Virus record (IMG/VR): IMGVR_UViG_3300027793_000052
Span: 1 to 64,000 of that record
DNA: 64,000 nucleotides
Reading direction: 5' to 3' (one strand)
A program made the position numbers and the translations under genes. Below are positions 3,170 to 51,265 of the stretch, in pieces; position 1 is the stretch's first letter, and each line of letters starts with the position of its first letter. The notes below the pieces were generated by a model. That model saw only the letters and a list, made by a program, of their open reading frames with translations. It had not been told where the DNA came from and did not search any database.

Positions 3170-4780
3170 ATGACAAAGTTCAAATCAAAAGCAGTGGAAA
3201 ATTTTGACGGTGGTATTTCTTATACCTTAAACCCATTGGATACATTACGTATCGTGGCAGCATCATCTATCTTTGGTGAACCATCTTATTACAGAGGTTC
3301 TCACGACAAACCATCTAACTTATCTACGTTAAAGACGTATGACGTGTTAGGTTTGTACAAAGACCCAAGTGATACAACTACTGATGTTTTCACTAAGGCT
3401 ATCGACGAGGCTTTAGACTATGACTTCAAGGCAACCCTTGAGTTAGCTAAGACTCTTCGTCACGAACACTTCATGAGGTTAAACCCAGCGGTTATCTTCA
3501 TTAGAGCGTCTCAACACCCAAAGAGGGTTGAATTTAACGAAGCAAACCCAGGTTTGATGAAACAATACGGTTTGGACATTGTTGGTCGTCCTGATGACAT
3601 CACCAACCAATTTGATTACTACATGTTCTTAAACGGTTCTAAGAATGGTTTACCATCTATCGTTAAGAGGACATGGGCTGAGAAGTTGGCGTCTTTCACC
3701 AAGTACCAAATCAAGAAATATAAGTCAAAGTCATTAATTGACTTGGTTCGTATTTCTCACGCACACTCTGAAGTTATCGATGAGTTAATGAAGACTGGTG
3801 ACGTGGCTGTTTCTGAAACTGAAACAACTTGGGAATCACTTAGGTCTCAAGGTAAGACTTGGAAGGAAATTCTTAACACAATTAAGGTTTCACACATGGC
3901 TTTACTTAGGAACTTAAGGGGTATTTTCACTGAGGTGAATGATACTGAAGTGGCTAAGAAGGTTTTAACTGACCTTAAGGCAGGTGTTAAGTTTGGTAAG
4001 CAATTCCCATTCCGTTACTACACAGCTTACAAGGAAATCGATAAGGTTTCTATAAACCACAAGGGTATGATACTTGACGCTTTACAAGAGTGTCTTGACA
4101 TCTCTATCGAAAACTTCCCTAAGTTAAAGGGTAAGGTGGCTTGTTTATCAGATAACTCTGGTTCAGCTTGGGGTACAATGACCTCTGAGTATGGTACAAC
4201 CCATATTGCTGAAATTGCTAACTTATCATCTATCATCACAGCTTTATGTTCTGATGAAGGATATGTCGGTGTCTTTGGTGAAAGATTGAGTTTAAAACCT
4301 GTTTCTAAAAGAGACGGTATTATTACTCAGTTGGAAGAAACTTGTAAGAGAGGTAAGTCTCAAGGACAATCTTGTGAACACGGTATTTGGTTATTCTTAC
4401 GTGAAGCAATCGACACTAAAACTCACTATGATACTATCTTTATTTATAGTGACATGCAGGCAGGACACGGTGGTCTTTACGGTACAAGTGTAAGCCGTGG
4501 TGACGTTCACTCTAGAGGTGGAAGTTATGTAGACGTACTTAAAATGGTACAAGAATACCGTAAGAAGGTTAACCCAAAGGTTAACGTATTCACAGTCCAA
4601 GTGGCTGGATACAACAACTCTGTTGTACCTGAAAACCTTTACAGGGGTTCAGTACTTGGGGGTTGGACTGGTAAGGAAGCCTTATACGCTAGTGAGGTAA
4701 TCAAGACTTGGGATGAAATTGAGTCTAACGACAAGGTTACATCTGAGGTTGAAGTTACTGAACAAGTAGTACAATCTTAA
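3170..4780 (+). CDS. Ro60/TROVE-domain RNA-binding protein (Rsr-like) with vWA domain
   Basis: MALLRNLR, KQFPFRYYTAY, vWA DNSGS and YSDMQ motifs; 536 aa; codon usage (AAC, TTC, CGT) suggests high expression. Confidence 0.9.
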   Translation: MTKFKSKAVENFDGGISYTLNPLDTLRIVAASSIFGEPSYYRGSHDKPSNLSTLKTYDVLGLYKDPSDTTTDVFTKAIDEALDYDFKATLELAKTLRHEHFMRLNPAVIFIRASQHPKRVEFNEANPGLMKQYGLDIVGRPDDITNQFDYYMFLNGSKNGLPSIVKRTWAEKLASFTKYQIKKYKSKSLIDLVRISHAHSEVIDELMKTGDVAVSETETTWESLRSQGKTWKEILNTIKVSHMALLRNLRGIFTEVNDTEVAKKVLTDLKAGVKFGKQFPFRYYTAYKEIDKVSINHKGMILDALQECLDISIENFPKLKGKVACLSDNSGSAWGTMTSEYGTTHIAEIANLSSIITALCSDEGYVGVFGERLSLKPVSKRDGIITQLEETCKRGKSQGQSCEHGIWLFLREAIDTKTHYDTIFIYSDMQAGHGGLYGTSVSRGDVHSRGGSYVDVLKMVQEYRKKVNPKVNVFTVQVAGYNNSVVPENLYRGSVLGGWTGKEALYASEVIKTWDEIESNDKVTSEVEVTEQVVQS

Positions 4781-4785
4781 AAAAT

Positions 4786-5256
4786 ATGGGGGACTTAATG
4801 TCCCCCTATTTATTTTATAGTGATATTATATTATTATTATATTCCGTGGTAAAGACGGAATATTTTTCATTTCTCAAGTACAACCGATTCAAATTTGGTA
4901 AACAGGAGGTTTCACAATTTGTAATTTTTGAGTTTAAGTGGTTGTTTTCAATAATAATTTTTTATTTTCATAAGTGTGATGATTCACAAGATAGGTTTCA
5001 TACTCACGCTTTTAATGCCCTATCATTTAAACTATTTGGTCAATATGATGAACATATATTAGATGATGAATCTAATGGTTCCTATCATACAGAACGTAGA
5101 ACACAAGTGGTAAAATATTTCCCTAGGGATTCTTATCATCGTATAGCAAACAGTAATGGTTGTTGTACTTTGTTGTTATCAGGCCCATGGAAAAAACATT
5201 GGAAGGAGTATGTTGACGGTAATGTAATACATTATACTTGGGGTAGAAAGAAATAG
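4786..5256 (+). CDS. Cupin-like hypothetical protein
   Basis: RFHTHAFNALSF ... YHRI ... TLLLSGPW pattern. Confidence 0.45.
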   Translation: MGDLMSPYLFYSDIILLLYSVVKTEYFSFLKYNRFKFGKQEVSQFVIFEFKWLFSIIIFYFHKCDDSQDRFHTHAFNALSFKLFGQYDEHILDDESNGSYHTERRTQVVKYFPRDSYHRIANSNGCCTLLLSGPWKKHWKEYVDGNVIHYTWGRKK

Positions 5257-6263: not shown

Positions 6264-8063
6264 ATGAGACATTTAATCAAGAAAATATTAAAAGAAGACA
6301 TCTTTCAAATGGATAGATTAAGGCAATTGGAAGAAGGTGACTTGTTCATCATCACAAAAGTTAATCAAAATCTAGAAGATTGTGATCCAGATGCTCTTAG
6401 TGTTCTAAACCCACTTATCGGTAAAGTTTGTAAAGTTATAACCACAGATTGGGATGTTAATTTATATGACGGTATGTGTGAAGAACATTATGGTTGGGGT
6501 GCTTATATAATGTCAGAAGATATGGTTGGTGGCCACGATTTATACGAAAAGAATGGTGAATGTAAAAAGGATAAATGTTATTGGGTTAATGACTACTATA
6601 TAGATTATGATATAATAGATGATGTAAATACTGATGAATTTTTTACACAACTAGACGAACAAGAAGAAGATTTTGGATGGATGGATGATATTATAGATAT
6701 ATCTATAAAAATAGGTGATGTTTTTTATATAGTAGATTATAATTACGGTTATGACATGCAACCTATAAATTATAGACCAAATGTAGTAAGATATATTTTT
6801 TATGTTACAGATATTTTTGAAGAAGGCGGTAAACTTCATTTAAATTACAAATATTGTGAACCTGTAAATGTCACATATAACCCAAAAGACTATATTAAAT
6901 CCAAATGTCGTTCCACGCAAGATGAGGTTATTGAATATGAAAGAGCTTTAGAGTTGGTAGATAAACAATATTGGCGATTTATGGGTAATAACAATATGAG
7001 TAATAATATAAACGAACAAGAAGAAGATTTTGGTTGGGCTGAAGAATCCATCTCAGGTGATTTAAATTTGGGTAAATATTTTGAAAATTCTGATATTTGT
7101 TTTGATGATGAAGTTAATGTTGATAACAACTGTAAAATTACCGTAACAAAAGATAGTTTTGTTTTTAAACTAAATTATAGTTGGTGGTTGAATAAATTTG
7201 GTGAAGACAATTGGATGTTGGATAGACTTATCAGATATGGAAGTATGGGATATGACAGTTATTATGTTGATTATGAGTTGGATGATGAGGAGTTTAATTA
7301 TATTTATTATATGATTAATGAAGAAAATAGATATAAACTAGCTGATTGTTTAAGTGTATTAAATGAAGATGTAAGTGAAAATGATTTAAAAAATAATCTA
7401 TATGATGTTTTTGAAAATTTTAATGGTATCTTACCGGTAGAAGGAATGGCCTCAGATGTTGTTTATGAACTATCAAGAGCTTTAGAAAAAAATCGAAATC
7501 AACAAATAAATTTGGAGTTTGAAGATTTAATGTCAAAGACTGTCGCTAAATTTGAACATGTTGGAGGTTGGAAAGAAGACTACATTTTAATAAAAATACC
7601 AAAAGAATTGGTTTTAGAAGCTTTAGAGCAAAATAAGGATGAAAATTTAACTGATATTGTGAAAAAATACAGTTACGTTTTTGATATAAATTGGGATGAT
7701 TTTTATTATGGTACTTTTGATTTAAGTGGTTCTGAGGATCAAATTAACGATATTATGGCCGATTATTTGGATAAATTAATTGATATATTAAATAATGATG
7801 ATACGATACAGACATTAAATAATTTTACATCTTCATTAAAAAAATTAGGTTTTAAAAAAGAAAATAATAAATGGTATAAAACAATTAAAAAAGATAATTT
7901 AGATTATGTTTTTATTGTTAGTGATATAAATGGTGAAGACATGAATTTAATTCTAACTATAACCGTTTTTTATGATACACAAACCAAATATAAAAATTAT
8001 AAATATAAAATAAGTTTTGACGAGTTGGGTTATTACATTAATAATTATATTTTAGACATATAA
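6264..8063 (+). CDS. Modular protein with MRHLIKKILKE leader and two EQEEDFGW junctions
   Basis: Leader plus repeated junction motif. Confidence 0.7.
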   Translation: MRHLIKKILKEDIFQMDRLRQLEEGDLFIITKVNQNLEDCDPDALSVLNPLIGKVCKVITTDWDVNLYDGMCEEHYGWGAYIMSEDMVGGHDLYEKNGECKKDKCYWVNDYYIDYDIIDDVNTDEFFTQLDEQEEDFGWMDDIIDISIKIGDVFYIVDYNYGYDMQPINYRPNVVRYIFYVTDIFEEGGKLHLNYKYCEPVNVTYNPKDYIKSKCRSTQDEVIEYERALELVDKQYWRFMGNNNMSNNINEQEEDFGWAEESISGDLNLGKYFENSDICFDDEVNVDNNCKITVTKDSFVFKLNYSWWLNKFGEDNWMLDRLIRYGSMGYDSYYVDYELDDEEFNYIYYMINEENRYKLADCLSVLNEDVSENDLKNNLYDVFENFNGILPVEGMASDVVYELSRALEKNRNQQINLEFEDLMSKTVAKFEHVGGWKEDYILIKIPKELVLEALEQNKDENLTDIVKKYSYVFDINWDDFYYGTFDLSGSEDQINDIMADYLDKLIDILNNDDTIQTLNNFTSSLKKLGFKKENNKWYKTIKKDNLDYVFIVSDINGEDMNLILTITVFYDTQTKYKNYKYKISFDELGYYINNYILDI

Positions 8064-8488
8064 TGAAAAATTTAATTAAAAAGATATTAAAAGAAAACGA
8101 AGAAGATTTTGGTTGGGCCGAAAATATTATAAGTTCTGATGATTTATTTATAAAAAGAGGGGATAATTATATTATAGATATGTGTAAAGATATGGTTGAT
8201 CCCAATTTGTTTAAAAAAAAATTTTACGAATTTTATGGTGAAAAAATAGTTGATGATTTAACTTCAAGAATGGATATTAACATCTTTAACAACCCCAACA
8301 TTGATGGTTATCTCAGAGAAAAAAAACCATTTCAAATATTAGTCGAATATGATGGAATAAAAATAAGTAGGACAGGATGGAATCCTTGTTATAGTGACTA
8401 TCAAGGTGAAAAATCCAAATTTACCAAAAAATTTCCTAAATTAAAATCTTTTACACCTTCAGACTTTCTATCGCTTATAATGGTTTAA
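8063..8488 (+). CDS. Single-module protein with MKNLIKKILKENEEDFGW leader
   Basis: Same motif family. Confidence 0.7.
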   Translation: MKNLIKKILKENEEDFGWAENIISSDDLFIKRGDNYIIDMCKDMVDPNLFKKKFYEFYGEKIVDDLTSRMDINIFNNPNIDGYLREKKPFQILVEYDGIKISRTGWNPCYSDYQGEKSKFTKKFPKLKSFTPSDFLSLIMV

Positions 8489-8614
8489 ATTTTTTAACAA
8501 ACTATTGATACTAATTTACTGTTTGTTTTTTATTGGTTATATTTTAATTGTAGGTAACAAAAAATAATACATTACGTATTAAAATGTAGATATTTATTAT
8601 GAAAGGGTGTATCA

Positions 8615-10289: not shown

Positions 10290-11033
10290 ATGGAAAATAG
10301 TGAGGATATACGTAAGTTTATAAACAGAGAAATTAAGGCAAATTCAATTTTTATCATCAAACAAATAGATAAAAAAGTTGCTTATGAATTTGTTAGGGTT
10401 TACCATTATTTGGGTGATGCTAAGTTCTTTGCTAAGTTTTCCTTTGGTTTATACCATAAAGAAACCGATGAATTATTAGGGATTACCGCCTTCTCAAACC
10501 CACAAGGTAATGTGGCTTTAAAAGGTTGGTTCGGATTACCTAATACAGACCAAACAGTATTAGAACTTAGTAGACTATGTGTTAAACCATACTTAAACGG
10601 AACCAACGCAACATCTTATTTATTGGGTAACAGTATAAAACTTCTTAAGAAAGAAGGGGTTAGAGCTGTTATAACATTAGCAGATGACAGTAGACACAAT
10701 GGTAGTATATACCAAGTATGTAATTTCAAATACTACGGTCTAACAGATAAAAAATCAGACTTCTTTCATTTGAACGATAAAGGCGAATGGAAAGTCAATC
10801 CAAGAGGACCCACAAAAGATAAAAACGGTGTATGGATTAATAGAACACAAAAACACAGATATGCCTACATCATAGACGAAAACCTAAAATGTCTATACGA
10901 ACAACTTTCATATCCTAAAAAAGACGATACAAAACAATATGATTGTTGTGCTGGTACTAAAATTGTAAAAGATAAACGCTTCAATATTGACTATCCGTGC
11001 CCCAAATGTACACTTTCTGTATTGGTCGAGTGA
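10290..11033 (+). CDS. Mom-like (GNAT-fold) DNA-modification protein
   Basis: HYLG, ELSRLC, LGNSIKLL, AVITLADD, HNGSIYQVCNFKYYG pattern. Confidence 0.65.
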   Translation: MENSEDIRKFINREIKANSIFIIKQIDKKVAYEFVRVYHYLGDAKFFAKFSFGLYHKETDELLGITAFSNPQGNVALKGWFGLPNTDQTVLELSRLCVKPYLNGTNATSYLLGNSIKLLKKEGVRAVITLADDSRHNGSIYQVCNFKYYGLTDKKSDFFHLNDKGEWKVNPRGPTKDKNGVWINRTQKHRYAYIIDENLKCLYEQLSYPKKDDTKQYDCCAGTKIVKDKRFNIDYPCPKCTLSVLVE

Positions 11034-11046
11034 TATTTATTAATAT

Positions 11047-11262
11047 ATGAATATCCATAAATTTATAAGAAGACATGATTTCATAAGTGGTAAACCATTT
11101 TATTCATTGTCAATGATTGAGGTTGTACCGAGAATTATATTTGATTTTGTACCAAACCGAATACCAACAAGATATTCAACAACAATGATTGATAGTAGGT
11201 ATTATTCTACGATAACATATAATAACCCAATGCCAATGGTCAACGGTACGGTACTATTTTAA
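11047..11262 (+). CDS. Hypothetical protein
   Basis: ORF track; ATATTTAT upstream. Confidence 0.45.
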   Translation: MNIHKFIRRHDFISGKPFYSLSMIEVVPRIIFDFVPNRIPTRYSTTMIDSRYYSTITYNNPMPMVNGTVLF

Positions 11263-19041: not shown

Positions 19042-19508
19042 AAGAAAAAATTATGAGCAAGGTGTTGAAAAAGATAATAAAAGAATCGTTATTGTTAGAA
19101 TCTATAGATATTTTTGATATAAATAACATACCTTGTGAGTTTAATATACATACTGAAAATAATAATAACATAACAGTAATATTCACACCAAATTCAGAAG
19201 ACTTTTACCAATTAAGTATTGAAATAAAAGATGACGGTTGTTATTATGTTATATTCGGTGTTATTATTGATGATGTAGTTAGAACATCTTTGACTTTAAA
19301 TAGTGATTACAGACTTAAAGTTTTATCTACTGTGTTCTCTTTAATTAAATACTATACAGATAAGTATAACGTTGAATGTTTGGAAATGGATATAGATGAT
19401 GAAATGAGATTAAAATTATATAATCTTTATTTTAGTAAACATTTTAAAAATTTCCAAGTAGATAAGTTAGGTAACAAAGTGAGATTAGTAAAAAATGATA
19501 AACTTTAA
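19038..19508 (+). CDS. Hypothetical protein with KVLKKIIKE leader
   Basis: ORF track; leader motif. Confidence 0.55.
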   Translation: MKEKIMSKVLKKIIKESLLLESIDIFDINNIPCEFNIHTENNNNITVIFTPNSEDFYQLSIEIKDDGCYYVIFGVIIDDVVRTSLTLNSDYRLKVLSTVFSLIKYYTDKYNVECLEMDIDDEMRLKLYNLYFSKHFKNFQVDKLGNKVRLVKNDKL

Positions 19509-30868: not shown

Positions 30869-31259
30869 GGGGGTGACTTGGAATTGATTGGCTACATTAG
30901 TTATTGTAAAAGCATGTCGAGACTTGTTTGTAGGCTCGTTAAACCAACAATCAAAATTTTAAATGGCGACATTTTCGCAGACGCTACTGTAGGTCACTTT
31001 GTGACTGAAGGTGCAGAGGTTGTAGCCTAATTAGATTAGGGTACACAACGGGGTTGGATTACCTAGGAACAGAAGTCCAAAAAAGGGTGTTACCACTACC
31101 ACAAAAGGGTAAAGTCAAACATGGAATGTGTCAACTAAGTCCATGGGAGAACTAAAAGATGAAGTTGTATATTTTGGGTGGTTAGAAAACCACATCCTAA
31201 ACATGTAGAAGACTTTAATTCATTAGAACAAGACGGCGGTTCGACCCCGCTCACCTCCA
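30869..31259 (+). ncRNA. ssrA: tmRNA
   Basis: GGGGGTG/CACCTCC-A acceptor with G3-U70, GCATGTCGAG after helix 2, GACGGCGGTTCGACCCCGC T-arm; tag ORF 30965-31030. Confidence 0.92.
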
Positions 31260-31292
31260 CTTTAGAAATTTATTAACCTAAAAATCGAAAAA

Positions 31293-36149: not shown

Positions 36150-36348
36150 GATTAACGATAACGTTTTAATAACAAGTTTTAACCCACCTTTGGAGGGTAG
36201 AATAGCTGACATGTATGAAATGGAACCAAATATGATTGGTGATCCTACTTTAACAAAAATGTATCCTAAAATGGTACCAATTATTGAGGTGATATTGAAA
36301 GACGGTAAGTTACGTTCTTTTGTGAAAGATGTTGTAAAAAAGGTTTAA
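36121..36348 (+). CDS. Hypothetical protein
   Basis: ORF track. Confidence 0.45.
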   Translation: MKKTIIDNFRINDNVLITSFNPPLEGRIADMYEMEPNMIGDPTLTKMYPKMVPIIEVILKDGKLRSFVKDVVKKV

Positions 36349-36350
36349 AT

Positions 36351-36442
36351 CTTTCGTTTATGGGTTTCATACAACTTCAATATATTCGTTTAGTGTTACT
36401 TTAACCGCTGTAGATACCTTTCGTTTATGGGTTTCATACAAC
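36351..36442. CRISPR. CRISPR-like mini-array A (1 full and 1 truncated 36-nt repeat, 31-nt spacer) overlapping an ORF 3' end
   Basis: GCTGTAGATACCTTTCGTTTATGGGTTTCATACAAC at 36407-36442; identical 25-nt part at 36351-36375; 32/36 identical to the array B repeat. Confidence 0.5.
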
Positions 36443-37347
36443 ATACGCACGCAGATTTTCTGAAATTCTGGGTATTCTACCCCCATTTCTTTACATTTTA
36501 ACCATATTTTATCATAATCTGCATATAAAACCGGTTTCTGATCACCAGTATCTATGTTATCTAAAAATAAAAAATCCCCATTTTTATCAATATATTTTGT
36601 CCATCCTGGTTGTTTTTCTGATTCTACCAATTCACAATCCATTAATTTTTCCATAATAAACCCCTCACATGGGGATAATTCCGGAACATCATTAACCCAA
36701 TCAAATTCTTCTTCGTTTTCTTTTAACCCTTTTTTACTTTTCATTAAGTTCTTTAAAACGTAAGAACCGGCTGATAATGATATACCCATCATAAGTTCAT
36801 CTAAGTTATCAACACTAAAACCTTTTTCTGATGCAATATCTTTTAAAGTATTTAAAATCGGAACTGACATAAAAGTAAAAGACAACACATCAATTAAAGT
36901 TGTTATAGTAACACCAATCTTCATACCTATAGTTTTAAATAAATTAATACTGGCATTCATAAATTTGACAACGCCCTTTAACTCTTCATTTAGTTTACGT
37001 TTTTTTAATTCAGAAATTAATTTTTTTAAATCTTCTTTGGACTTAGATGTCAAAATGTAAACTGCTGTCATAACCAAAAGTGTTGCATCATATTCGGTTA
37101 TGTTTATGTTTTTATTATGTAATAATTCTATAACAGGCCCAGAAAAAGCACTAATACCTAAACCATAAGTTAACATAAAGTCAGCATTGATTTTCATATC
37201 GTTAATAACTTTTTTAATTATAGGTTTACTACTTGGTATACCACCACTACCTTCATTAATTATTTTTTCATACATCATGTGAACTTGACCTTCCATGTAC
37301 ACACGTTCAGTTAATAAGTTTAACGATAATTTTGATAAGTTACTCAT
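36367..37347 (-). CDS. Two-module protein: membrane module plus array-associated module ending in repeat/spacer-coded peptide
   Basis: LKENEEEFDW junction; C-terminal module paralogous to 48217-48675. Confidence 0.65.
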   Translation of the reverse strand: MSNLSKLSLNLLTERVYMEGQVHMMYEKIINEGSGGIPSSKPIIKKVINDMKINADFMLTYGLGISAFSGPVIELLHNKNINITEYDATLLVMTAVYILTSKSKEDLKKLISELKKRKLNEELKGVVKFMNASINLFKTIGMKIGVTITTLIDVLSFTFMSVPILNTLKDIASEKGFSVDNLDELMMGISLSAGSYVLKNLMKSKKGLKENEEEFDWVNDVPELSPCEGFIMEKLMDCELVESEKQPGWTKYIDKNGDFLFLDNIDTGDQKPVLYADYDKIWLKCKEMGVEYPEFQKICVRMLYETHKRKVSTAVKVTLNEYIEVV

Positions 37348-40203: not shown

Positions 40204-42819
40204 ATGCCTTACGAAATAGATCCTAAAAATAAAAAATGTGTCAGAAAGGCCGATAGCAAAAAACGTGTCGGTTGTACAAAAGGTTCTGTAAAGAAGTACC
40301 TTACAGCATTACGTATGAATGTTAGTGAATCTGAAATGGGTGATTTTGAATGGGCGGAAGAAACTATAAGTGGTGGAGTGGATTTAAACAACCCTGAAGT
40401 TTTATTTACAGTTTTAGAAGATACATTTAAAAACAGTAATTTTAAAATAGTAAAAAACGGTGGTATCTATCATATCGAAGACCAATACGGTGATATATAT
40501 TCCTACATAAGTAAAAATGACTTCAACCTACCTTTTATTTATCATGATATTAAAGATAATATAACATTTTTAACTGGTGAAGGTGATAATGATTTATTAC
40601 CTTATTATAGGAGATTACTTAACTTAATAAGACATTTATATAAAAACAACATAAACCAATTATTCAAACCCATCAATGAAACAGAAGATGATTTTAGTTG
40701 GTTTGATTTGGATAGTGGGGTAAGATTAGGTGACTTATGGCAAAGTGGTACCTTAAAAGTTGGTGATGTTATTTTTATCTCTGGTGATGTTTATGATGGT
40801 GAAGGTAAGTTATTAACAACATTTAATAAAGAATTATTCGAAGTCACTCAAATAATCGTACATGGTGATGACCATAGAATGAAATTTAAATGGGTTGATA
40901 ACACAAAAGAAAAACCTAATGATTGGAAGGATGTTTTGAGTTATGAAAATACTATAATAGTAGACGGTTTAATTGATTCTGATTTTAAATGGATAATAGA
41001 ACCTGTAACAAAATCAATTAATGAATCTGAAGAAGGTGAATTTGGTTGGGTTGAAGATATCTTAGATAACCCAATTAATATGTTAGTAAAGGGTGGTGTT
41101 TATTTAGTTAATCACAGAGATAAGGATGAATGGGGGTTAAATGTTAAAGTTTTAGATTTTACAAGTGATACTGTGTCTTACATAAGAAGAGTAACTGATA
41201 ATGGTGATCAAACCTTAAATAATAGTGAAAACATAATAGGTAGAAGTAGGGTTGATAAGTTAATAACCCGTAATTATTGGCAATTAATACCAACCAAAAC
41301 CTCTTTATTTAGTGATACTATAAAAGAATCCGAAGATAATTTTGGATGGGCTGAAGATATAATTGAAAAACCATTTTTAGATTTTACAGGTAAGGAACTT
41401 TTAATAGATGTTAGAGGTTTTACAGAGGAAGAACGTGAAGAATTGTACCAAGTCTTAAAAGGTTATATAGATTTTGATTATGGTAGAGAACATAGAGGTG
41501 ATTGGAACCCCAAATGTATTATAGATAATTATAATCTTAAATCGGTTTGTCTTCATTGTGGTACTGAGGATTTTGATTATGAACCACAAAGAGGTCATAT
41601 ATGTTGTTTATCTAACACATATGACGAACAACCGGCTTACACCAAAGCAAATATCATACCAATTGACGGTAAAATTTTATTGGGTAAAAATAATTTAAAT
41701 GAGGCTGAAAAAATTAGTTCTGATGATTTTGGATGGGCTGAAGATATAATACACGGTGAAGCTATCGGAATTAACATACAAGGTAAAGACGATTTTATAA
41801 GAAACCTAAAACCAGGTTCCGTTTTAAAGATAAGTGGTGACCAAGACGGATTGTTTTTTTATGATGAAATGGTTGAGGTTGTGTCTAATTTTCCTAGTTC
41901 CGATGATAGAGCGACAAATTTAAAATTAATAAAATTTAGTGGTTTTTTAGCAACTGATGATGCTGATGCTGATATGGAAGGTACACATTGTGGTGGTATT
42001 TCAACTAATGATGAAATTAAATCTAAATGTGGGTGTGAAAATTATGGTGAAGGTATAAATCAAGATATGGGTATTGGTAGATGCTGGTGGGTTGATTTGA
42101 AAAACTCAGTAGACGAAATATCTTTCTATCCATCCAAAAGTAATATAATGGAAAATAAAAATAAAAAACCTTTATTAAAAGAAGGTCGTTATGACCGTAT
42201 AACAAGTAGTGTTGTAAGGGACATTATGGAATTGGTGAAAACTAATAAAGAAGGTTATTTTCATTTACCCGATGATGTTAGGGATGAATTATATTATGAA
42301 CAAGAAGGTTTATCTTTTAGTGTTGAAATAACGATAAAAAAAACAGAAGATCCTATAACATTTGAAGTTGGTACTATTACGGTTGGTGATGAAGAATATG
42401 ATGAAGAATACGATGAAAACGTGTTAGAAATGTCAATCTTATTGGGTACAAATTTTAATAGACAAAATTTTGAAAGTTTATTTTATAAACTACAAGAAGA
42501 TGTGAGACATGAAATAGAACACTTTACTCAAGAAGGTCCTGATAGAATAAAAGATAAACCTAAATCTAAAGAAAAAACATCAGAATTACCACCATTCGAA
42601 CATCATACACATATAACTGAAATACCAGCTTTGGTACATGGTTTTTATCGTCGAGCTAAATTGGAAAGAAGACCATTAGATGAAATAATGGTTGAAGATT
42701 TAGATGAAGATATATCCAAAGGTAATTTAACCAAAGAACAGGCTAGTCAAATACTCACATTATGGATTGATTACGCCAAAAAACATTTACCACATGCTCA
42801 ATATAGTGGTGAATATTAA
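40204..42819 (+). CDS. Large modular polyprotein-like protein: five E-x-DFGW-type junctions plus C-terminal HExxH module
   Basis: VSESEMGDFEW, INETEDDFSW, INESEEGEFGW, IKESEDNFGW, LNEAEKISSDDFGW; VRHEIEHFTQ. Confidence 0.7.
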   Translation: MPYEIDPKNKKCVRKADSKKRVGCTKGSVKKYLTALRMNVSESEMGDFEWAEETISGGVDLNNPEVLFTVLEDTFKNSNFKIVKNGGIYHIEDQYGDIYSYISKNDFNLPFIYHDIKDNITFLTGEGDNDLLPYYRRLLNLIRHLYKNNINQLFKPINETEDDFSWFDLDSGVRLGDLWQSGTLKVGDVIFISGDVYDGEGKLLTTFNKELFEVTQIIVHGDDHRMKFKWVDNTKEKPNDWKDVLSYENTIIVDGLIDSDFKWIIEPVTKSINESEEGEFGWVEDILDNPINMLVKGGVYLVNHRDKDEWGLNVKVLDFTSDTVSYIRRVTDNGDQTLNNSENIIGRSRVDKLITRNYWQLIPTKTSLFSDTIKESEDNFGWAEDIIEKPFLDFTGKELLIDVRGFTEEEREELYQVLKGYIDFDYGREHRGDWNPKCIIDNYNLKSVCLHCGTEDFDYEPQRGHICCLSNTYDEQPAYTKANIIPIDGKILLGKNNLNEAEKISSDDFGWAEDIIHGEAIGINIQGKDDFIRNLKPGSVLKISGDQDGLFFYDEMVEVVSNFPSSDDRATNLKLIKFSGFLATDDADADMEGTHCGGISTNDEIKSKCGCENYGEGINQDMGIGRCWWVDLKNSVDEISFYPSKSNIMENKNKKPLLKEGRYDRITSSVVRDIMELVKTNKEGYFHLPDDVRDELYYEQEGLSFSVEITIKKTEDPITFEVGTITVGDEEYDEEYDENVLEMSILLGTNFNRQNFESLFYKLQEDVRHEIEHFTQEGPDRIKDKPKSKEKTSELPPFEHHTHITEIPALVHGFYRRAKLERRPLDEIMVEDLDEDISKGNLTKEQASQILTLWIDYAKKHLPHAQYSGEY

Positions 42820-45819: not shown

Positions 45820-47282
45820 CTTTGTTCTCTTATTCTATCATCCACAAGTTTTGGTGGGGGTAGTATTTTAAGCATTGTATTTTTTTCATTTCTAGCTGTT
45901 TTTTTATCGTTACTTAAAAAAACAAACTTATCTGTTAATCTTACCACTGTTACATTAGTACCTGGACCCCACTTTCTACCCCTTTCTTTATACACAACAG
46001 TATCACCAATAGATAAATTTTTGGTGGATTGATTTATTTTGGTACCTTCTTCACCCATTATTTTATAAAAATTTAAAACTAATCTATACGCAATTTCTTC
46101 TTTTGCCTCACTATTTAAATCCTTAGTTACCCCATCTTCATCTAGTGATTTAATAATTTCTGATAATTTAACAATTTGATTTTTATCTTTTAAATTATTT
46201 AAAAAATAATAACCAAAATCATCTTGACTAAAATAATCCGACATATCTTCAAAGTTAGAGGTCAAAAGTAAAGAAATATCTAATGTTAAAAAAGGTATAT
46301 CGTAACCGTTATAGTTATTAAAATAACTATTCATCGGTAAACCCCTATAATTTATTATTATATCATTTAAAAAAGGAACATCTTGAATGACACCATTTAA
46401 CATTTTAGGGAAAATATGTATGTAACCACGGTTAGTTGTAATACCTGCGACATAAGGTTTTAATTTATCAAGAAAGGTATTAATTTTATTTTTTTTATTT
46501 TTTACAATATCACCTACATATTTTTTACAAGCCTCGATACCATCTTTAGGTAAGATAGTTATCATAAAAGAAGATTCCATTCTTTGGTCCTCCATCGAAT
46601 ACCATTCCCAATCAATTGGTTTTTCAAAAAAAGGAAACTTTATATGGACGGCTATTTTGTAATTTCCAACTTCCTGACCTCTAGTTGGGTGTAATTCTTT
46701 TTTATCTAACCAAAATATCAAAGAACCTTCTTTAGAGTATCTATTCCAATAATTTGAATTAGATGTTGACACACACCAACTTGAGTGTATTCCGTATTTA
46801 CATGAAGCCTCATGTGTTAAAGGTGAAATAAGTAACCATCTATCATCCTCCCAAATTTTAACCCTATTAGCTGTGGCCGGTTTTAATTCTTCAAAGTACT
46901 CACACATTGGTTTTATCCAAAGGTGTGAAACATAAGAGTTAATATCTTTTGGTGCTTTTTTAATCCTATCAAATTCTTTTTTTTGTTCTTCACTTGGATT
47001 TTGGAAGTTTTGTTCACTATATATTGCGGCAACAGTTTTGTCATTTAAACGATTAGTATTTGTATGAAAACATTTAACCGCATCAATTATTTCATTACCA
47101 CTTTCCGGTGAAATAATAATATTTTTAACCATCCACTCAAGGTATTTGTTATTACCTGAGGGGTCGTTTCCAGATAAAGAACGTATGGTTTCTTCATCTA
47201 CATTATTATATTTTTTAATGACATCCTCTAAACGCCCTTCATTTATAATCTGCTCTAATATAATGTATTTAATATTTGTCAT
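45795..47282 (-). CDS. DPSGNNKYL-family protein
   Basis: DPSGNNKYLEW and PLTHEASCKYG..WCV shared with 50324 and 55049 ORFs. Confidence 0.6.
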   Translation of the reverse strand: MTNIKYIILEQIINEGRLEDVIKKYNNVDEETIRSLSGNDPSGNNKYLEWMVKNIIISPESGNEIIDAVKCFHTNTNRLNDKTVAAIYSEQNFQNPSEEQKKEFDRIKKAPKDINSYVSHLWIKPMCEYFEELKPATANRVKIWEDDRWLLISPLTHEASCKYGIHSSWCVSTSNSNYWNRYSKEGSLIFWLDKKELHPTRGQEVGNYKIAVHIKFPFFEKPIDWEWYSMEDQRMESSFMITILPKDGIEACKKYVGDIVKNKKNKINTFLDKLKPYVAGITTNRGYIHIFPKMLNGVIQDVPFLNDIIINYRGLPMNSYFNNYNGYDIPFLTLDISLLLTSNFEDMSDYFSQDDFGYYFLNNLKDKNQIVKLSEIIKSLDEDGVTKDLNSEAKEEIAYRLVLNFYKIMGEEGTKINQSTKNLSIGDTVVYKERGRKWGPGTNVTVVRLTDKFVFLSNDKKTARNEKNTMLKILPPPKLVDDRIREQRWIRKYII

Positions 47283-47521
47283 GGTATTAATTTAATTATT
47301 TATTCTAATAAATAAATATCAATTTATTTGTAATAATATCTTGACAGTAATATAAAAAATAAGTAATATTAACTTGTAATCGAAACGGTGAGACCGACAA
47401 CAAAACTCAGACAGTAAGGTTAAGGAAAGATTCGAGTGAATCATGGAAATAATCGAGGACTGTAATTATAAGAAAGGGTCTCTATTGATTAATAGGAGGT
47501 AACCCGAAAGTTACCACATAC

Positions 47522-47594
47522 GCGGAAGTAGTTTAACTATTAGAACACAACACATCCTGTGTTGGGGTAACAGTGAAAATCTGATTCTTCTGCT
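47522..47594 (+). ncRNA. tRNA-Gly-like RNA with non-canonical loop, copy 1
   Basis: GCGGAAG/CTTCTGC, U73; CAACA-CATCCTG-TGTTG; T-loop TGAAAAT. Confidence 0.55.
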
Positions 47595-47603
47595 CTAATA
47601 AAC

Positions 47604-47673
47604 GCGGAGGTCGTATAATGTTAATATGTCGTACATCCTGTATGAAGATTGTGGACGAACCCACACTTCCGCT
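47604..47673 (+). ncRNA. tRNA-Gly-like RNA with non-canonical loop, copy 2
   Basis: GCGGAGG/CTTCCGC, U73; TCGTA-CATCCTG-TATGA; T-loop ACGAAC. Confidence 0.55.
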
Positions 47674-47715
47674 CAACCCATAACCCGATAATAAAATATC
47701 GGGTTTTTTTATACG

Positions 47716-48138
47716 ATGGAAAAATTAAAAGTAGGTGATTTCGTTTCTTGTTTCTATAGTTTTAGAACTGGTACCGCTTACGGTAAAGTTTTAAAAATAC
47801 ATGATTTAAAAAATAATATAGATTGTGATGAATACGGTCCTATTATTACAGGTATGGGTGATGAGAATAGTAAACTTAAAGTAACCGTAAAAATATTAGG
47901 TTATGATATGGGTGAAGATTACGGTATTAACAGTTTAGGTGAAATTGTTGAAGATGTTGAAGAGACTAGGGAGTTGGATGTACATAAAATTTTCTACATT
48001 ATAGATGAGAAACTAATTCGTGAAATGAGAATTGAGTGGGAGAATTTAATGAAAAAGAAGTTAGATTTCTTATATAAAAACATTAATAGGGATGTTTTGT
48101 CAGGCAGAAAAACCATCAAAGGGTTAAATATGACTTAA
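47716..48138 (+). CDS. Hypothetical protein
   Basis: ORF track. Confidence 0.5.
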   Translation: MEKLKVGDFVSCFYSFRTGTAYGKVLKIHDLKNNIDCDEYGPIITGMGDENSKLKVTVKILGYDMGEDYGINSLGEIVEDVEETRELDVHKIFYIIDEKLIREMRIEWENLMKKKLDFLYKNINRDVLSGRKTIKGLNMT

Positions 48139-48141
48139 TAA

Positions 48142-48367
48142 ACCTTTCGTTTATGGGTCTCCCACAACCAAGGTTTAAAAAGGGATCTTAAAAAATGGAC
48201 TGTAGACACCTTTCGTTTATGGGTCTCCCACAACAAACTTGCGGTGGAGTGGGGAGTTAAATTTAGCTGTAGACACCTTTCGTTTATGGGTCTCCCACAA
48301 CAGTTCATCAACCGTACCGTCAATTGGTGAAGCTGTAGACACCTTTCGTTTATGGGTCTCCCACAAC
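48142..48367. CRISPR. CRISPR-like mini-array B: 3 full and 1 truncated 36-nt repeats, spacers of 30/31/30 nt
   Basis: GCTGTAGACACCTTTCGTTTATGGGTCTCCCACAAC at 48199, 48266, 48332 and partial at 48142; unique spacers; repeat can fold into a hairpin; no cas gene seen. Confidence 0.65.
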
Positions 48368-48675
48368 ATATTAACACATATTTTCTGAAATTCTGGGTAA
48401 GAAACCCCCATTTTTTGACATTTTTTCCAGATTTTACCATAATCAACATATAAAACCGGTTTCTGATCACCAGTATCTATATTATCTAAAAATAAAAAAT
48501 CCCCATTTTTATCAATATATTTTGTCCATCCTGGTTGTTTTTTTGATCCTACCAAGTTACATTCTGATAATTTATCATAAATAAATTTTTCTGCCTCAGA
48601 TAATTCTGGAATATCATCAAACCAATCTAAATTTTCTATGGATTCTTTTAATATTTTTTTAATTAAATTCCTCAT
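48217..48675 (-). CDS. Leader-bearing protein reading in frame into array B
   Basis: MRNLIKKILKE; LWETHKRKVSTA occurs twice, encoded by the repeats. Confidence 0.65.
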   Translation of the reverse strand: MRNLIKKILKESIENLDWFDDIPELSEAEKFIYDKLSECNLVGSKKQPGWTKYIDKNGDFLFLDNIDTGDQKPVLYVDYGKIWKKCQKMGVSYPEFQKICVNMLWETHKRKVSTASPIDGTVDELLWETHKRKVSTAKFNSPLHRKFVVGDP

Positions 48676-48732
48676 ATCATATAAATATTTTGTATATTTG
48701 TAAAAATTAAAATAAATAGACCTCTCTAAGAG

Positions 48733-49251
48733 ATGGAAAATTTAGTATTAAAAGGTAAAATAATATTTGATCCTGAAAACAGAACCAGGAAACACAACCG
48801 TCAGGCTGATTGGAAACGTATTGCCATGGTTCATTTTGATGGTGAGATGTGTGATTATTATGCTTGGTTTATTGAACGTAGATATAATATAAAACTAAAT
48901 AAACCACTTAGAGGTTCACACATTACCTTTATTAATGATAGTACTAAGGACCTGACTAAGAATTTTACAATACCCGTCAAAGTTATTAATGACAATTGGT
49001 CTAAACTTAAAGATAAGTGGGATGGTAAAGAAATAGAAGTTACTTTAAACCTAGATTTACGTTCCAACGGGGAACATTGGTGGATGAAAGTTCATTCACA
49101 ATCATTCGAGGATATTAGAACCGAAATAGAATTAGGTAGACCTTTCTTTAACTATCACATGACTATTGGTTATGCTAATGAACGTAATATAGAACATTCT
49201 GAATATATTGTTGGTCTCATAGATAAATTTGGTAATAATTATGGTATATAA
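48733..49251 (+). CDS. 2H phosphoesterase-family protein
   Basis: Two HxT motifs: SHITF and YHMTI. Confidence 0.65.
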   Translation: MENLVLKGKIIFDPENRTRKHNRQADWKRIAMVHFDGEMCDYYAWFIERRYNIKLNKPLRGSHITFINDSTKDLTKNFTIPVKVINDNWSKLKDKWDGKEIEVTLNLDLRSNGEHWWMKVHSQSFEDIRTEIELGRPFFNYHMTIGYANERNIEHSEYIVGLIDKFGNNYGI

Positions 49252-49278
49252 TACCAACAAATTGATTATAATTGTAAA

Positions 49279-49830
49279 ATGAAAATTATAGAAACTAAAA
49301 TAAAAGATTTGGTTATCATTAAACCAAAAGTTTTTAAAGATGACAGAGGTCATTTTCTTGAAACTTATAATCAAACCGTGTTTGAAAAATTGGGCATAAA
49401 TTTCGGTGACTTTCACCAAGACAATCAATCTTTATCTAAAAAAGGTGTATTAAGAGGTTTACACTTTCAAAAGGGTGAACACGCCCAAGCCAAATTGGTT
49501 AGAGTTATAAAAGGTTCAGTTTTAGATGTGGCGGTTGACCTGAGAGAAGGTTCACCAACTTACGGTGAATGGAAATCTGTTTTGTTAACTAGTGATAATA
49601 ATGTTATGTTTTTTATACCGGAAGGTTTTGCACATGGATTTATTACACTAGAAGATGATACAATATTTAGTTACAAATGTAATAAACCTTACAACAAAGA
49701 ATTTGAATCCGGTATTTTGTGGAATGATCCTGATTTAAACATAGATTGGATGTTATACGGTGATGAACCAATAATGTCAGGAAAAGACCTAACTTTACCA
49801 ACCCTTGAGGAATTAAATCAAAACTTATAA
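49279..49830 (+). CDS. rfbC: dTDP-4-dehydrorhamnose 3,5-epimerase
   Basis: VFKDDRGHF, QDNQSLS..GVLRGLHFQ, QAKLVRV, PEGFAHGF. Confidence 0.95.
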   Translation: MKIIETKIKDLVIIKPKVFKDDRGHFLETYNQTVFEKLGINFGDFHQDNQSLSKKGVLRGLHFQKGEHAQAKLVRVIKGSVLDVAVDLREGSPTYGEWKSVLLTSDNNVMFFIPEGFAHGFITLEDDTIFSYKCNKPYNKEFESGILWNDPDLNIDWMLYGDEPIMSGKDLTLPTLEELNQNL

Positions 49831-49844
49831 AATTTTAAAATTGA

Positions 49845-50249
49845 ATGGAAAAATTTAAAGTGGGTGATGTCGTTAGATTGACCAATGGTTTGACTGCAAA
49901 GGTTTTAAATAAACCTGGTACTTTTATGTCAAACGGTTCTTATGAAATAATGTTGGTGGAGTATACTATGAACGGTAGGATTTTACCTATAAAAGACAGT
50001 AAAAAATGGATTAAACCTGACGAAATTGCCTATAGTTTAACACAAACTGACACACATGAACCTCTTGAAAATTACATGGAAATTATCTATAACGGTCAAG
50101 AAATAGTCTTCATACCAAAAGATATTAGTAAAGTAGAATTGGTTAAAGATGAAAACGGTTTTCAAACAATCAGACTCCATTATGAAGGTCACATACATGG
50201 TAGTATAAACATTCTAATTGGTGATAATAAAATAGAAAATAATGGGTAA
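49845..50249 (+). CDS. Hypothetical protein
   Basis: ORF track. Confidence 0.5.
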   Translation: MEKFKVGDVVRLTNGLTAKVLNKPGTFMSNGSYEIMLVEYTMNGRILPIKDSKKWIKPDEIAYSLTQTDTHEPLENYMEIIYNGQEIVFIPKDISKVELVKDENGFQTIRLHYEGHIHGSINILIGDNKIENNG

Positions 50250-50323
50250 GATTTTGTCAAAATGACCAAACAAACATGGAAAATCTAAGTTTAATTTATT
50301 AATGTTAGATAAAAGTTTTAAAT

Positions 50324-51265
50324 ATGAATAAGAAAGAATTAAAAAACCTAAATAAAGATTTGGAAATACATTTGGTTGACATAATCAACATGTTTGACCC
50401 TTCTAAGACAAATAAATACACTAAATTCTTAGTTGATATGTTTAAAAATTATATTTCTGAAAAAAATGAAAAAATTTCAAATAGGGACATACCATTAATT
50501 GGTAAAATAACTGGGGTGAAAGATGATAATGAGTTTTTATATAAAATACCACAATCTAAAAATGAACTAGAAGAAGTATTAGTTGATTATATTCACGATG
50601 TTTTTAGTTATGAAAGATTAGAATCCTTACACAAATTTGACTACCATTTAAAGTTTGGTAGAATACCTCTTGAATATCGTGATATAAACAAATGTAATAG
50701 TTGGGACGATATTGTTCGTCTTAGTTCTTTAGCTACAATTAAAGAAAAAGAAAAATCACTAGAAAAAGAAATTTTAAAAGTTTACGAAGATAATTCTTGG
50801 CTCGCAATTAAACCATTAACTTTTAAAGCTTCATTGGCATATGGTTCTGGCACAAAATGGTGTACAGCCTCAAAAAACAACAAAGATTATTTTTATAGAT
50901 ATTCTAGAAATGGTGTTTTGATTTATGTAATTAGTAAGGAAAGTGGTAGAAAATTTGGTGTGTATTATACTGATTATGATGTGTTAACACCAGAATTTTC
51001 TGTATGGAATGAAATTGATAATAGAATTGACACTATTCAAACGGGTATACCTTCTGATGTGATGTCTGAAATTTATAAAAATTGTGTATCAGATATGAAA
51101 AACGTAAAATATTTTTCTGAAGAAGAATACCTAAAAAGTGAAAAGTATTATATACCAGAAGTAGTACCGATACAACAAATTGACGAAGAAGAAGCTAATA
51201 TCATATATAATTATGGTGTTGATTACGAGACACCAGACACACCCCCAAGAGAAACCGATTTTTAA
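50324..51265 (+). CDS. DPS-family protein (PLT..AS..YG..WC motif)
   Basis: FDPSKTNKY, KPLTFKASLAYGSGTKWCTAS. Confidence 0.6.
   Translation: MNKKELKNLNKDLEIHLVDIINMFDPSKTNKYTKFLVDMFKNYISEKNEKISNRDIPLIGKITGVKDDNEFLYKIPQSKNELEEVLVDYIHDVFSYERLESLHKFDYHLKFGRIPLEYRDINKCNSWDDIVRLSSLATIKEKEKSLEKEILKVYEDNSWLAIKPLTFKASLAYGSGTKWCTASKNNKDYFYRYSRNGVLIYVISKESGRKFGVYYTDYDVLTPEFSVWNEIDNRIDTIQTGIPSDVMSEIYKNCVSDMKNVKYFSEEEYLKSEKYYIPEVVPIQQIDEEEANIIYNYGVDYETPDTPPRETDF

Follow-up and report, generated by a model that had tools for sequence, protein, structure and literature searches.

Can a conserved protein-coding sequence double as the repeat of a CRISPR array? The question is raised by a locus at 48 kb in the window that we analyzed, which is the first 64 kb (64,000 nucleotides [nt]) of a 318-kb phage contig (317,983 bp; IMGVR_UViG_3300027793_000052). 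At this locus, an open reading frame (ORF) on the minus strand runs into a short series of 36-nt repeats and unrelated spacers. Our results show that the locus is a genuine CRISPR-type array and that its leader-side repeat is made up of the last 12 conserved codons of a phage gene. They also show that the gene-plus-array module is conserved across uncultivated giant phages of one group, whose capsids are of the T4 type. The array probably depends on some Cas machinery. As for its role, our preferred reading, which we hold with a probability of about 0.4, is that the module is a cas-less mimic of a type VI-B-like repeat from Bacteroidota that would hijack or titrate the Cas13b of the host, its spacers being written in trans.

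The elements of the locus, in the direction of the ORF, are the following.

48217..48675, minus strand: ORF of 152 amino acids (aa); residues 1 to 115 are the family domain, and residues 116 to 152 are the translated S1, R2, S2, and start of R3.
48332..48367, minus strand: repeat R1, encoding residues 103 (third base) to 115, MLWETHKRKVSTA, at the end of helix 3 of the modeled domain.
48302..48331, minus strand: spacer S1, 30 nt, with the translation SPIDGTVDEL.
48266..48301, minus strand: repeat R2, identical to R1.
48235..48265, minus strand: spacer S2, 31 nt, which shifts the frame.
48199..48234, minus strand: repeat R3, with T instead of C as its last base; the ORF ends here at TAA in the shifted frame.
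48169..48198, minus strand: spacer S3, 30 nt, which is the sole spacer of a one-spacer variant of the array (L018).
48133..48168, minus strand: repeat R4, of which the first 27 nt (48168-48142) are identical to the repeat, followed by sharp divergence.
48643..48675, minus strand: leader peptide MRNLIKKILKE (codons 1 to 11), common to four unrelated ORFs of the window and modeled with low confidence.
48676..48704, minus strand: sigma-70-like promoter match (TTTACA-17-TATGAT) directly upstream of the ORF start, a consensus match only, in a region where the number of such matches is not above that in shuffles.

Three 36-nt repeats, with spacers of 30, 31, and 30 nt and a truncated fourth repeat, extend along the minus strand from 48367 to 48133. 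They are spaced at 66, 67, and 66 nt, and R1 to R3 agree within one mismatch; the expected number of such sets, that is, three repeat copies within three mismatches, was 0.00 in 100 shuffles. Conservation in R4 extends to position 48142, whereas the nominal 36-nt unit reaches 48133, and the degenerate end overlaps the stop codon of a convergent gene (47716-48138, plus strand). R1 begins within the Met103 codon, its first base being the third of that codon. From there, the C terminus of the ORF (48675-48217) reads ...NM-LWETHKRKVSTA-SPIDGTVDEL-LWETHKRKVSTA-KFNSPLHRKFVVGDP and stops at the TAA inside R3 because the 31-nt S2 shifts the frame. The repeat was found in two IMG/VR contigs (317,983 and 132,425 bp), both of which are identical to the window around the array, and a megablast search of window positions 46000-51000 against 50,697 deposited phage records returned no relatives.

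A preliminary description of this stretch, made without database searches, had proposed a CRISPR-like array fused in frame to the C terminus of a protein, with the ORF in the leader position and the degenerate repeat at the trailer end. Our analysis supports both the fusion and the polarity. The repeats, spacers, and truncated distal repeat were confirmed, and the translation through repeat, spacer, and repeat, ended by the 67-nt unit, is exactly as that description had it. What it missed is that the repeat is integral to a whole gene family and that a second copy lies in the same window.

The repeat constitutes the final 12 conserved codons in a family of phage proteins of about 105 to 115 aa. 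A word-indexed search yielded 23 homologs, and an exhaustive profile search of 1.84 billion representative proteins yielded 70 clusters. All members are unnamed, and none falls into a Pfam, PHROGs, or NCBIfam family. Searches of PADLOC, PDB sequence profiles, and the ESM Atlas with the protein gave nothing informative, and longer members with N-terminal extensions had no Pfam match. The aligned proteins are conserved as far as ...DML(Y/W)E(T/I)(H/Y)KRKV.T. and hypervariable thereafter, with several repeating the motif exactly 10 residues on. An AlphaFold model of residues 1 to 115 has a mean predicted local distance difference test (pLDDT) score of 86; residues 25 to 115 are mostly above 90, and residues 1 to 22 are poorly ordered. 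The modeled fold consists of a helix, four strands, and two helices, in that order, and the repeat-encoded residues 103 to 115 are predicted with high confidence to form the end of the last helix. Foldseek searches with the model found no significant match in PDB, and those against BFVD gave borderline best matches only (E ~1e-3, template modeling [TM] score ~0.5), to uncharacterized proteins of uncultured phages.

Evidence that gene and repeat belong together comes from 34 repeat chains, which were collected from non-redundant loci of IMG/VR, JGI metagenomes, and ENA assemblies. Of these, 32 start inside the 3' end of a family gene, and one of the two exceptional chains lies in a frameshifted copy of such a gene. 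In a different phage (L007), the family protein is 55% identical to that of the window, and three repeats with two unrelated 30-nt spacers occupy the same place. Family genes also stand in tandem on two contigs of one sample, with at least 5 in 2 kb and at least 12 in 20 kb. The locus L019 includes a frameshifted and partly deleted family gene (10881-11195, plus strand) that still ends in a truncated repeat, which indicates that gene copies decay in place. At L020, a TnpB gene (OrfB_IS605 plus Cas12f1-like_TNB; 7310-8572, plus strand) lies directly upstream of the tandem family genes, with an HTH_OrfB_IS605 fragment (19232-19357, minus strand) near it. This TnpB probably belongs to an insertion sequence element within the phage, although it is an RNA-guided nuclease adjoining repeat-bearing genes.

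The module is not restricted to closely similar genes. A distant subfamily, homologous to the first over its full length (hhalign probability, 99.7%), has proteins that end in WL.E.YNL(K/R)G.TP., and its DNA carries another 36-nt repeat that is identical to the first type at 24/36 positions, along with 30-nt spacers and a degenerate terminal copy. In one 263-kb phage, such a module has a DnaJ gene on one side and a cluster of tRNAs on the other. The same module with a diverged repeat implies that the gene-plus-array arrangement is old and that the repeat diverged along with the gene. The window itself holds a second module, 12 kb from the first.

36367..37347, minus strand: paralogous gene of 326 aa, with 72% identity to the 48-kb copy over the C-terminal ~115 aa.
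36340..36442, minus strand: second mini-array, consisting of a full repeat (36442-36407), a spacer (36406-36376), and a truncated repeat (36375-36340).

The paralog is extended at its N terminus by ~200 aa, which include one hydrophobic segment. In its mini-array, the full repeat encodes MLYETHKRKVSTA, the spacer measures 31 nt, and the truncated repeat keeps the first 25 nt. The 326-aa protein occurs on at least 10 contigs, its tail unchanged. At the other end of the 48-kb protein, the 11-residue leader recurs as M(R/K)(N/H)LI(K/R)KI(L/I)KE at five ORF starts in the window, namely 6264, 8063, 11853, and 39472 on the plus strand and 48675 on the minus strand, and the same peptide heads proteins of other phages (L009 and L016) and of the distant subfamily. 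By analogy with known phage leaders, it is possibly a capsid-targeting or propeptide signal, and proteins that bear it may be packaged and injected.

Is the repeat conserved because of the peptide that it encodes or because of its nucleotides? Our data indicate that it is constrained at both levels. Within the repeat, CGA serves for 23/25 arginines, AAG for 25/26 lysines, ACC for 16/16 threonines, TTG for 22/27 leucines, and GTG or GTA for 26/26 valines. In the upstream parts of the same genes, the corresponding use is 0/54 for CGA, 6% for AAG, 17% for ACC, 15% for TTG, and 2% for GTG. Because the repeat is built from codons that the same genes otherwise avoid, the nucleotides themselves must be maintained, and codon choice at the level of translation does not explain the pattern.

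At the RNA level, a hairpin is predicted to close over the whole repeat on the ORF-sense strand, with an energy of -9.7 kcal/mol, compared to -5.7 kcal/mol on the other strand. Pairs of the terminal stem are kept in 74 to 94% of 34 unique repeats on the sense strand versus 12 to 88% on the antisense strand, and since this stem relies on G-U pairs, it exists on the ORF-sense strand only. Furthermore, standard pairs fill 83.5% of the pair cells, as opposed to 31 to 53% when the partners are slid. The plus (antisense) strand was considered as the RNA strand and rejected, given that both the array polarity and the G-U pairs favor the ORF-sense strand; similarity to VI-B repeats (11.7 for sense and 12.7 for antisense) cannot decide the strand. 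A leader-repeat hairpin was likewise rejected, as the upstream pairing that is predicted in the window is absent from other loci and is not significant.

The spacers show where the inserted sequence does not come from. At least two repeats are present in 27 of the 34 chains, which together hold 42 spacers in arrays of one to three. All 42 differ from one another; 33 are exactly 30 nt long, and the range is 29 to 34 nt. The seven lone-repeat loci are in L019 and L020, while both window loci have spacers. The spacer guanine-plus-cytosine (GC) content of 37.0% exceeds that of random 30-mers from the same loci (29.5%; p=7e-7), and no spacer matches its own phage. Being mutually different, foreign in GC content, and without a match to self, the spacers are not local duplications and were taken from other DNA. 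Simple intragenic duplication, the counter-explanation named in the preliminary description, fails for the same locus family in that spacers are neither invariant nor homologous across relatives.

The organization of the arrays also resembles that of cellular ones. Terminal repeats are sharply truncated after nt 20 to 30 (n=20), and a published VI-B array (NZ_CP022387) shows the same truncated terminal repeat. In some arrays, repeat variants form blocks from the gene side, such as GAT-GAT-GAT-GAA at L033 and GAG-GAG-GAA-GAA at L045, with a further case at L028; such blocks are expected if the gene-embedded repeat is copied at each insertion. A comparison of L007 (3200-3700) with L029 (1402-1840) revealed a downstream flank that is 100% identical over 230 nt, genes that are ~92% identical, and no spacer in common, from which it follows that arrays are also recombination breakpoints between phage lineages.

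Does the protein make use of the sequence that the spacers add to it? The preliminary description held that each spacer acquisition rewrites the tail of the protein, and half of this proposal stands. A change in the array does alter the tail, which differs in length (152 versus 135 aa) between forms with identical flanks. There is, however, no sign of selection for it. Stop codons are not depleted in the ORF frame, as had been suggested they might be: 24/42 spacers are stop-free in that frame, compared to 20 and 30 in the other two sense frames and 23 to 27 on the reverse strand. In addition, 9/42 spacers have frame-breaking lengths, and half of the first spacers include a stop. Arrays with spacers of 29, 31, 32, 33, or 34 nt or with early stops are common, and they run on past the stop codons. 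At L018, L031, L038, L042, and L045, ORFs stay open through all spacers to a stop after the truncated repeat. The lack of stop depletion, the frame-breaking lengths, and the stops in first spacers all suggest that the spacer-encoded tail is a by-product.

What, then, could the module do for the phage? Under our preferred reading, the repeat would mimic the 36-nt class 2 repeat of a host that is probably a member of the Bacteroidota, with type VI-B (Cas13b) as the kind that it resembles most. It would be transcribed as the 3' end of the gene's mRNA, in abundance and from several gene copies, with each repeat copy presenting 30 nt of any sequence plus a full hairpin. Such a 3'-end RNA would have the shape of an extraneous CRISPR RNA (crRNA) that sequesters Cas13b. 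The phage could in this way titrate or reprogram the one kind of CRISPR effector against which a shield around the DNA does not help a giant phage; phages with shielded DNA are within reach of RNA targeting alone. Adaptation machinery supplied in trans would insert spacers at the repeat nearest the gene, just as VI-B arrays normally borrow Cas1-Cas2, and recombination between repeats would remove them again. Spacers that have a full repeat after them may also act as guides, and the variable protein tail would be a by-product. That decoy or titration activity is the main selected function is a tentative proposal, for which we see somewhat less than an even chance.

The surroundings of the locus give this proposal a setting. 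The gp23-type capsid gene, translation genes, tmRNA, and tRNAs assign the window to an uncultivated giant phage. Its genes include those for the gp23-type major capsid protein, DnaJ, SmpB, IF3, RF-1, DHFR, and several homing endonucleases, and its RNAs include a transfer-messenger RNA (tmRNA; 30869-31262, plus strand; 82 bits) and 22 to 24 tRNAs, in clusters between 2410 and 21688. With tmRNA, SmpB, IF3, RF-1, DnaJ, and tRNAs, the phage has an unusually full translation-rescue set. A Ro60/TROVE-like gene lies at 3170-4780 (plus strand), and a 2H phosphoesterase-like gene (48733-49251, plus strand) lies directly beside the array gene; a relative (L033) encodes a protein with a cREC_REC domain (3176-4819). 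Taken together, the Ro60/TROVE-like, 2H phosphoesterase-like, and cREC_REC proteins hint at an RNA-repair toolkit. Together with tmRNA, SmpB, IF3, RF-1, and the tRNAs, the Ro60/TROVE-like and 2H phosphoesterase-like genes fit a phage under attack at the RNA level. The nearest clusters of an RmlC-like gene (49279-49830) are mostly from Bacteroidota, with some from Cyanobacteriota, which may weakly hint at a Bacteroidota host.

Other features lie close to the array. The genes at 47716-48138 and 49845-50249 (both plus strand), which flank it, have a common N terminus, MEK(L/F)KVGD, with 27/30 nt identical. Just downstream of the trailer end, the intergenic sequence 47420-47712 (plus strand) has a predicted fold of -77.3 kcal/mol (z = -3.15), a stability reached by 0/200 shuffles. 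It ends in an intrinsic terminator (47682-47705) and matches no Rfam family, and we list it as a candidate structured RNA.

Several of our results weigh against the preferred reading. First, no cas1, cas2, cas13, or other effector gene was detected by Pfam and PADLOC among the 61 window ORFs of at least 100 aa, in line with the preliminary description; within the window's phage, the search covers 64 of 318 kb. Likewise, no cas genes lie within 3 to 10 kb of about 30 related arrays. Second, two degenerate-pattern scans of 185,579 species genomes found no cellular array with the repeat pattern, although such scans are pattern dependent and would miss a host repeat that differs at a fixed position; the three single matches all fall within unrelated cellular genes. 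All 18 of 18 loci matched in JGI metagenomes are gene linked and phage-like. The scans therefore yielded no host-identical repeat, which is the hallmark of known viral mini-arrays. Third, the changes seen in the hairpin are one-sided only (e.g., G-C to G-U), and none is two-sided, so that covariation does not prove the structure. An alternative pairing of the upstream coding sequence with R1 is predicted as well, without being significant. Finally, ribosomes cross R1, and in this gene R2 too, and should compete with hairpin folding and Cas binding.

Spacer gain is also less directly visible than the preferred reading would have it. The locus L018 is identical to the window in its flanks (240 nt upstream and 200 nt downstream), has one spacer instead of three, and shares the trailer-side spacer. 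The three-spacer form with its 152-aa product is found on 11 contigs and the one-spacer form with its 135-aa product on 1. The L018 form is most simply explained by a single deletion between R1 and R3 and not by a gain, and since the pair fits one deletion, it demonstrates array change but not necessarily acquisition. Furthermore, the three-spacer array is identical on all 11 contigs, which shows that turnover is not fast within this phage.

The remaining counterevidence concerns the repeat itself, which the preliminary description had likened to Cas13b-type repeats. The size of 36 plus 30 nt, the GUUG end, and the full-length hairpin bear this out, but the identity of at most 22/36 and the A-rich loop do not, and the likeness is one of resemblance only. 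The best identity to a published VI-B repeat, that of Flavobacterium columnare, is 22/36. Across the inner 28 nt, identity to six VI-B repeats is 11.7, compared to 7.5 +/- 1.9 for shuffles and 18.7 among real VI-B repeats. The window repeat ends in CAGC and not CAAC; relatives at L019 and L020 do have GUUG...CAAC, whereas the window repeat, GUUGU...ACAGC, is closed by a G-U pair. Its loop is A rich (AUAAACGAAA) and not poly-U, the U-rich version being on the opposite strand.

Further searches around the locus can be summarized briefly. No cas13b, csx27, or csx28 gene is found beside the array. Matches to Cas9 models are all in one small ORF (<400 aa) and coincide with Pfam HNH matches, which suggests a homing-type HNH domain. 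An 871-aa ORF without a database match (40204-42819, plus strand) was considered as a compact Cas13 and rejected, as it has no PADLOC or Pfam match and consists of repeated acidic-linker modules. The acidic motif E(S/D)xDDF(G/S)W(A/V)ED, which normally sits after the N-terminal leader, recurs four or five times within it, as if leader-linked modules had been strung together. A search of the window for a tracrRNA-like anti-repeat gave chance matches of 10 to 14 nt only. Rfam, run permissively on 47500-49000 and at gathering threshold on the whole window, placed no CRISPR-DR or other family on the array.

Among the rival explanations, the one that fares best is that the module is a guide mini-array. 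The phage would borrow a host Cas effector and direct its own spacers against competing phages or host transcripts, and the repeat would lie within the gene only because the gene's promoter drives the array. Consistent with this, one to three spacers without cas genes is the size class of viral mini-arrays (PMC11656645; PMC6858448), the spacers are compositionally foreign and without a match in their own phage genome, and 27/34 loci have at least one spacer. Yet protospacers are missing. With mismatches tolerated, none was found for the 42 spacers in the fetched loci or for the window array in 50,697 phage records (INPHARED); exact matching of four of the 42 spacer cores against IMG/VR gave none either, the S1 and S2 cores matching nothing else. 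The geometry is also unfavorable. A VI-B spacer sits 5' of its repeat, and in 11/27 arrays the only spacer precedes a truncated repeat, which cannot form the hairpin that Cas13b binds. In addition, the collateral RNase activity of Cas13 would harm the resident phage too, and the seven solitary-repeat loci, along with strict repeat conservation, point to the repeat as the functional unit. We therefore regard guiding as a somewhat unlikely primary role.

A bolder idea does away with the host array. Gene and array could form one autonomous, phage-resident adaptive unit in which the gene acts as CRISPR leader and its last 12 codons act as repeat. The small protein, probably packaged and injected, would work with RNAs, guide-like or decoy, that are cut out of the tail of its own mRNA, and spacers would be written by phage machinery encoded in the other 254 kb or by an attracted host integrase. 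We consider this unlikely. The narrower proposal of an autonomous phage system, with its own effector or integrase elsewhere in the 318 kb and the ~105-aa protein as partner of an RNA from its own mRNA tail, strikes us as more unlikely still. In its favor, the linkage of gene and repeat is strict across deep divergence, the repeat codiverges with the gene, and no collection that we scanned holds a host array with this repeat. Moreover, 64 of the 318 kb are visible, and huge phages with their own CRISPR-Cas are known (PMC11656645). Against it stand the lack of a cas-like gene in the window and within 3 to 10 kb of about 30 related arrays and a protein that resembles no Cas, Acr, or nucleic-acid-binding fold.

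Another possibility is that the module acts at the DNA level, as an adaptation sink. A look-alike of the leader-repeat junction would divert host Cas1-Cas2 from the host array, and with hundreds of replicating phage genomes per cell, new spacers would land in phage DNA and be of no use to the host there. This would explain the unselected spacers, the many copies per genome, and the conservation of the repeat at the nucleotide level; the location in an ORF would be irrelevant, and neither RNA folding nor escape from ribosomes would be needed. Use of Cas1-Cas2 in trans on differing leaders and repeats is documented (PMC8092290). But spacers acquired at the time of infection should be mostly phage derived, and those that we found do not match the phage and have a higher GC content than it. 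One would need to invoke purifying selection that removes spacers matching the phage itself. The array is also stable on 11 contigs. We know of no precedent for such a sink and find it improbable as the main explanation.

The possibility that the locus has nothing to do with CRISPR appears very improbable. Under this view, it would have arisen by tandem duplication within the gene, encode a protein repeat, or be a scar of recombination in a multigene family. The view draws on the fact that the repeat is coding and its amino acid motif conserved, on the arrays being recombination breakpoints (92% upstream and 100% downstream in L007 and L029), and on the failure to find cas genes or protospacers. 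However, repeats within an array are identical in nucleotides while the 30-nt inserts have nothing in common, and a strict 30-nt ruler holds over 27 independent arrays and two diverged repeat classes. The inserts are of foreign base composition, some units break the frame, and arrays continue beyond stop codons. A protein-repeat reading in particular was rejected on account of frame-breaking units, stops inside spacers, and nucleotide-identical repeats beside unrelated spacers. Least credible is programmed tail diversification, in which the array would serve a changeable C-terminal peptide: tails do differ between relatives, five ORFs read through all spacers, and the repeat-encoded residues are within the confidently folded model domain, but the ORF frame is no more open (24/42) than five control frames (20 to 30), 9/42 spacers break the frame, half of the first spacers have a stop, and arrays continue past it.

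A CRISPR repeat that is a gene's own last twelve codons and that is trailed by an array without cas genes is an arrangement that has not been described before. If the preferred reading of a Cas13b-directed mimic is correct, no viral mimic of a repeat, and no viral mini-array, of the RNA-targeting type VI kind would have preceded it. It is also a clear natural case in which a CRISPR repeat is at the same time conserved protein-coding sequence, subject to two levels of selection. Giant phages escape DNA-targeting defenses and stay exposed to Cas13, for which a multicopy Cas13b decoy would be an expected, and directly testable, countermeasure. More generally, the arrays record natural spacer insertion into phage genomes, which bears on how arrays that lack cas1 and cas2 are filled. 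Compact variants of the repeat that Cas13b tolerates could serve as tools, as could a new small protein partner.

How does the module compare with known systems? Type VI-B arrays have a 36-nt repeat with GUUG...CAAC ends and a poly-U loop, 30-nt spacers, and crRNAs in which the spacer is 5' of the repeat, and they lack cas1 and cas2 (10.1101/092577). Their spacers are acquired in trans via the Cas1-Cas2 of another system, despite different leaders and repeats, and they are transcribed from the leader into the array (PMC8092290). Experiments have shown that an extraneous crRNA made of leader and first repeat sequesters Cas13b and lowers defense; Cas13b binds the hairpin formed by the whole repeat, and hosts suppress the extraneous crRNA by means of a leader-repeat hairpin (PMC13187072). 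The phage arrays are similar in their 36-nt repeat, 30-nt spacers, GUUG 5' end, and predicted whole-repeat hairpin, and also in their sharply truncated terminal repeat, presumed leader-side transcription, and lack of adjacent cas1 and cas2. They differ in that the phage "leader" is a protein-coding gene. Moreover, VI-B hosts block processing of the first repeat with the leader-repeat hairpin, whereas a phage decoy would need the first repeat to be processed. The II-C repeat of F. columnare is also 36 bp long (PMC8092290), and an affiliation of the phage repeat with type II-C is conceivable.

Viral mini-arrays are without cas genes, hold one to three spacers, and are presumed to use host Cas (PMC6858448; PMC11656645). 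The arrays described here are likewise phage borne, have one to three spacers and no cas genes, and vary in spacer content between relatives. In known mini-arrays, however, the repeat is identical to that of a host array and most spacers target related viruses, neither of which is seen here. Known mini-arrays are also intergenic, while the first repeat of the phage arrays is the conserved coding 3' end of a protein family, and the phage module is multicopy with a repeat that is VI-B-like.

A coding sequence under two constraints has a counterpart in TnpB and IscB, whose omega-RNA overlaps the 3' end of its own gene, so that the scaffold DNA is constrained at both the protein level and the RNA level. 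There, the protein is itself the RNA-guided nuclease (~400 aa, RuvC), and the guide is fixed by the transposon end and cannot expand as an array. The phage protein, in contrast, is of ~105 aa and has no nuclease motif or known fold. A second analogy is with the internal proteins of T4, which resemble the leader-bearing proteins of the window in being diverse, small, encoded by a phage with a T4-type capsid, and alike only in a short N-terminal leader (PMC3012670). T4 proteins with the capsid-targeting sequence are packaged and injected and act against host defense (PMC3012670). What suggests the analogy is solely the common 11-residue leader, MRNLIKKILKE, which ends in L-K-E.

Finally, our findings bear comparison with two kinds of CRISPR-like viral RNA. 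Cracrs, which are regulatory RNAs that resemble crRNAs (10.1101/2024.10.29.618823), are like the phage module in that an array-like arrangement is frequent among them. Their description covers types I-E, I-F, and V-A, with no mention of type VI or of elements in coding regions (10.1101/2024.10.29.618823), and their partial-length spacers match the promoters of cas or toxin genes, a kind of target of which none is known here. Racrs, or RNA anti-CRISPRs, are like the phage module in that a virus carries a copied CRISPR repeat with the potential to occupy Cas proteins, and seven of the related loci have a single repeat. Racrs are small, non-coding, intergenic RNAs with their own promoter, whereas the phage repeat is translated and usually followed by spacers. 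The Racr survey, the largest of its kind in viruses, reported solitary repeats for all CRISPR types except VI, using a finder that masks confident ORFs (PMC10651486). Because ORFs were masked, coding repeat elements like those at the ends of this phage gene family would have been invisible to it.

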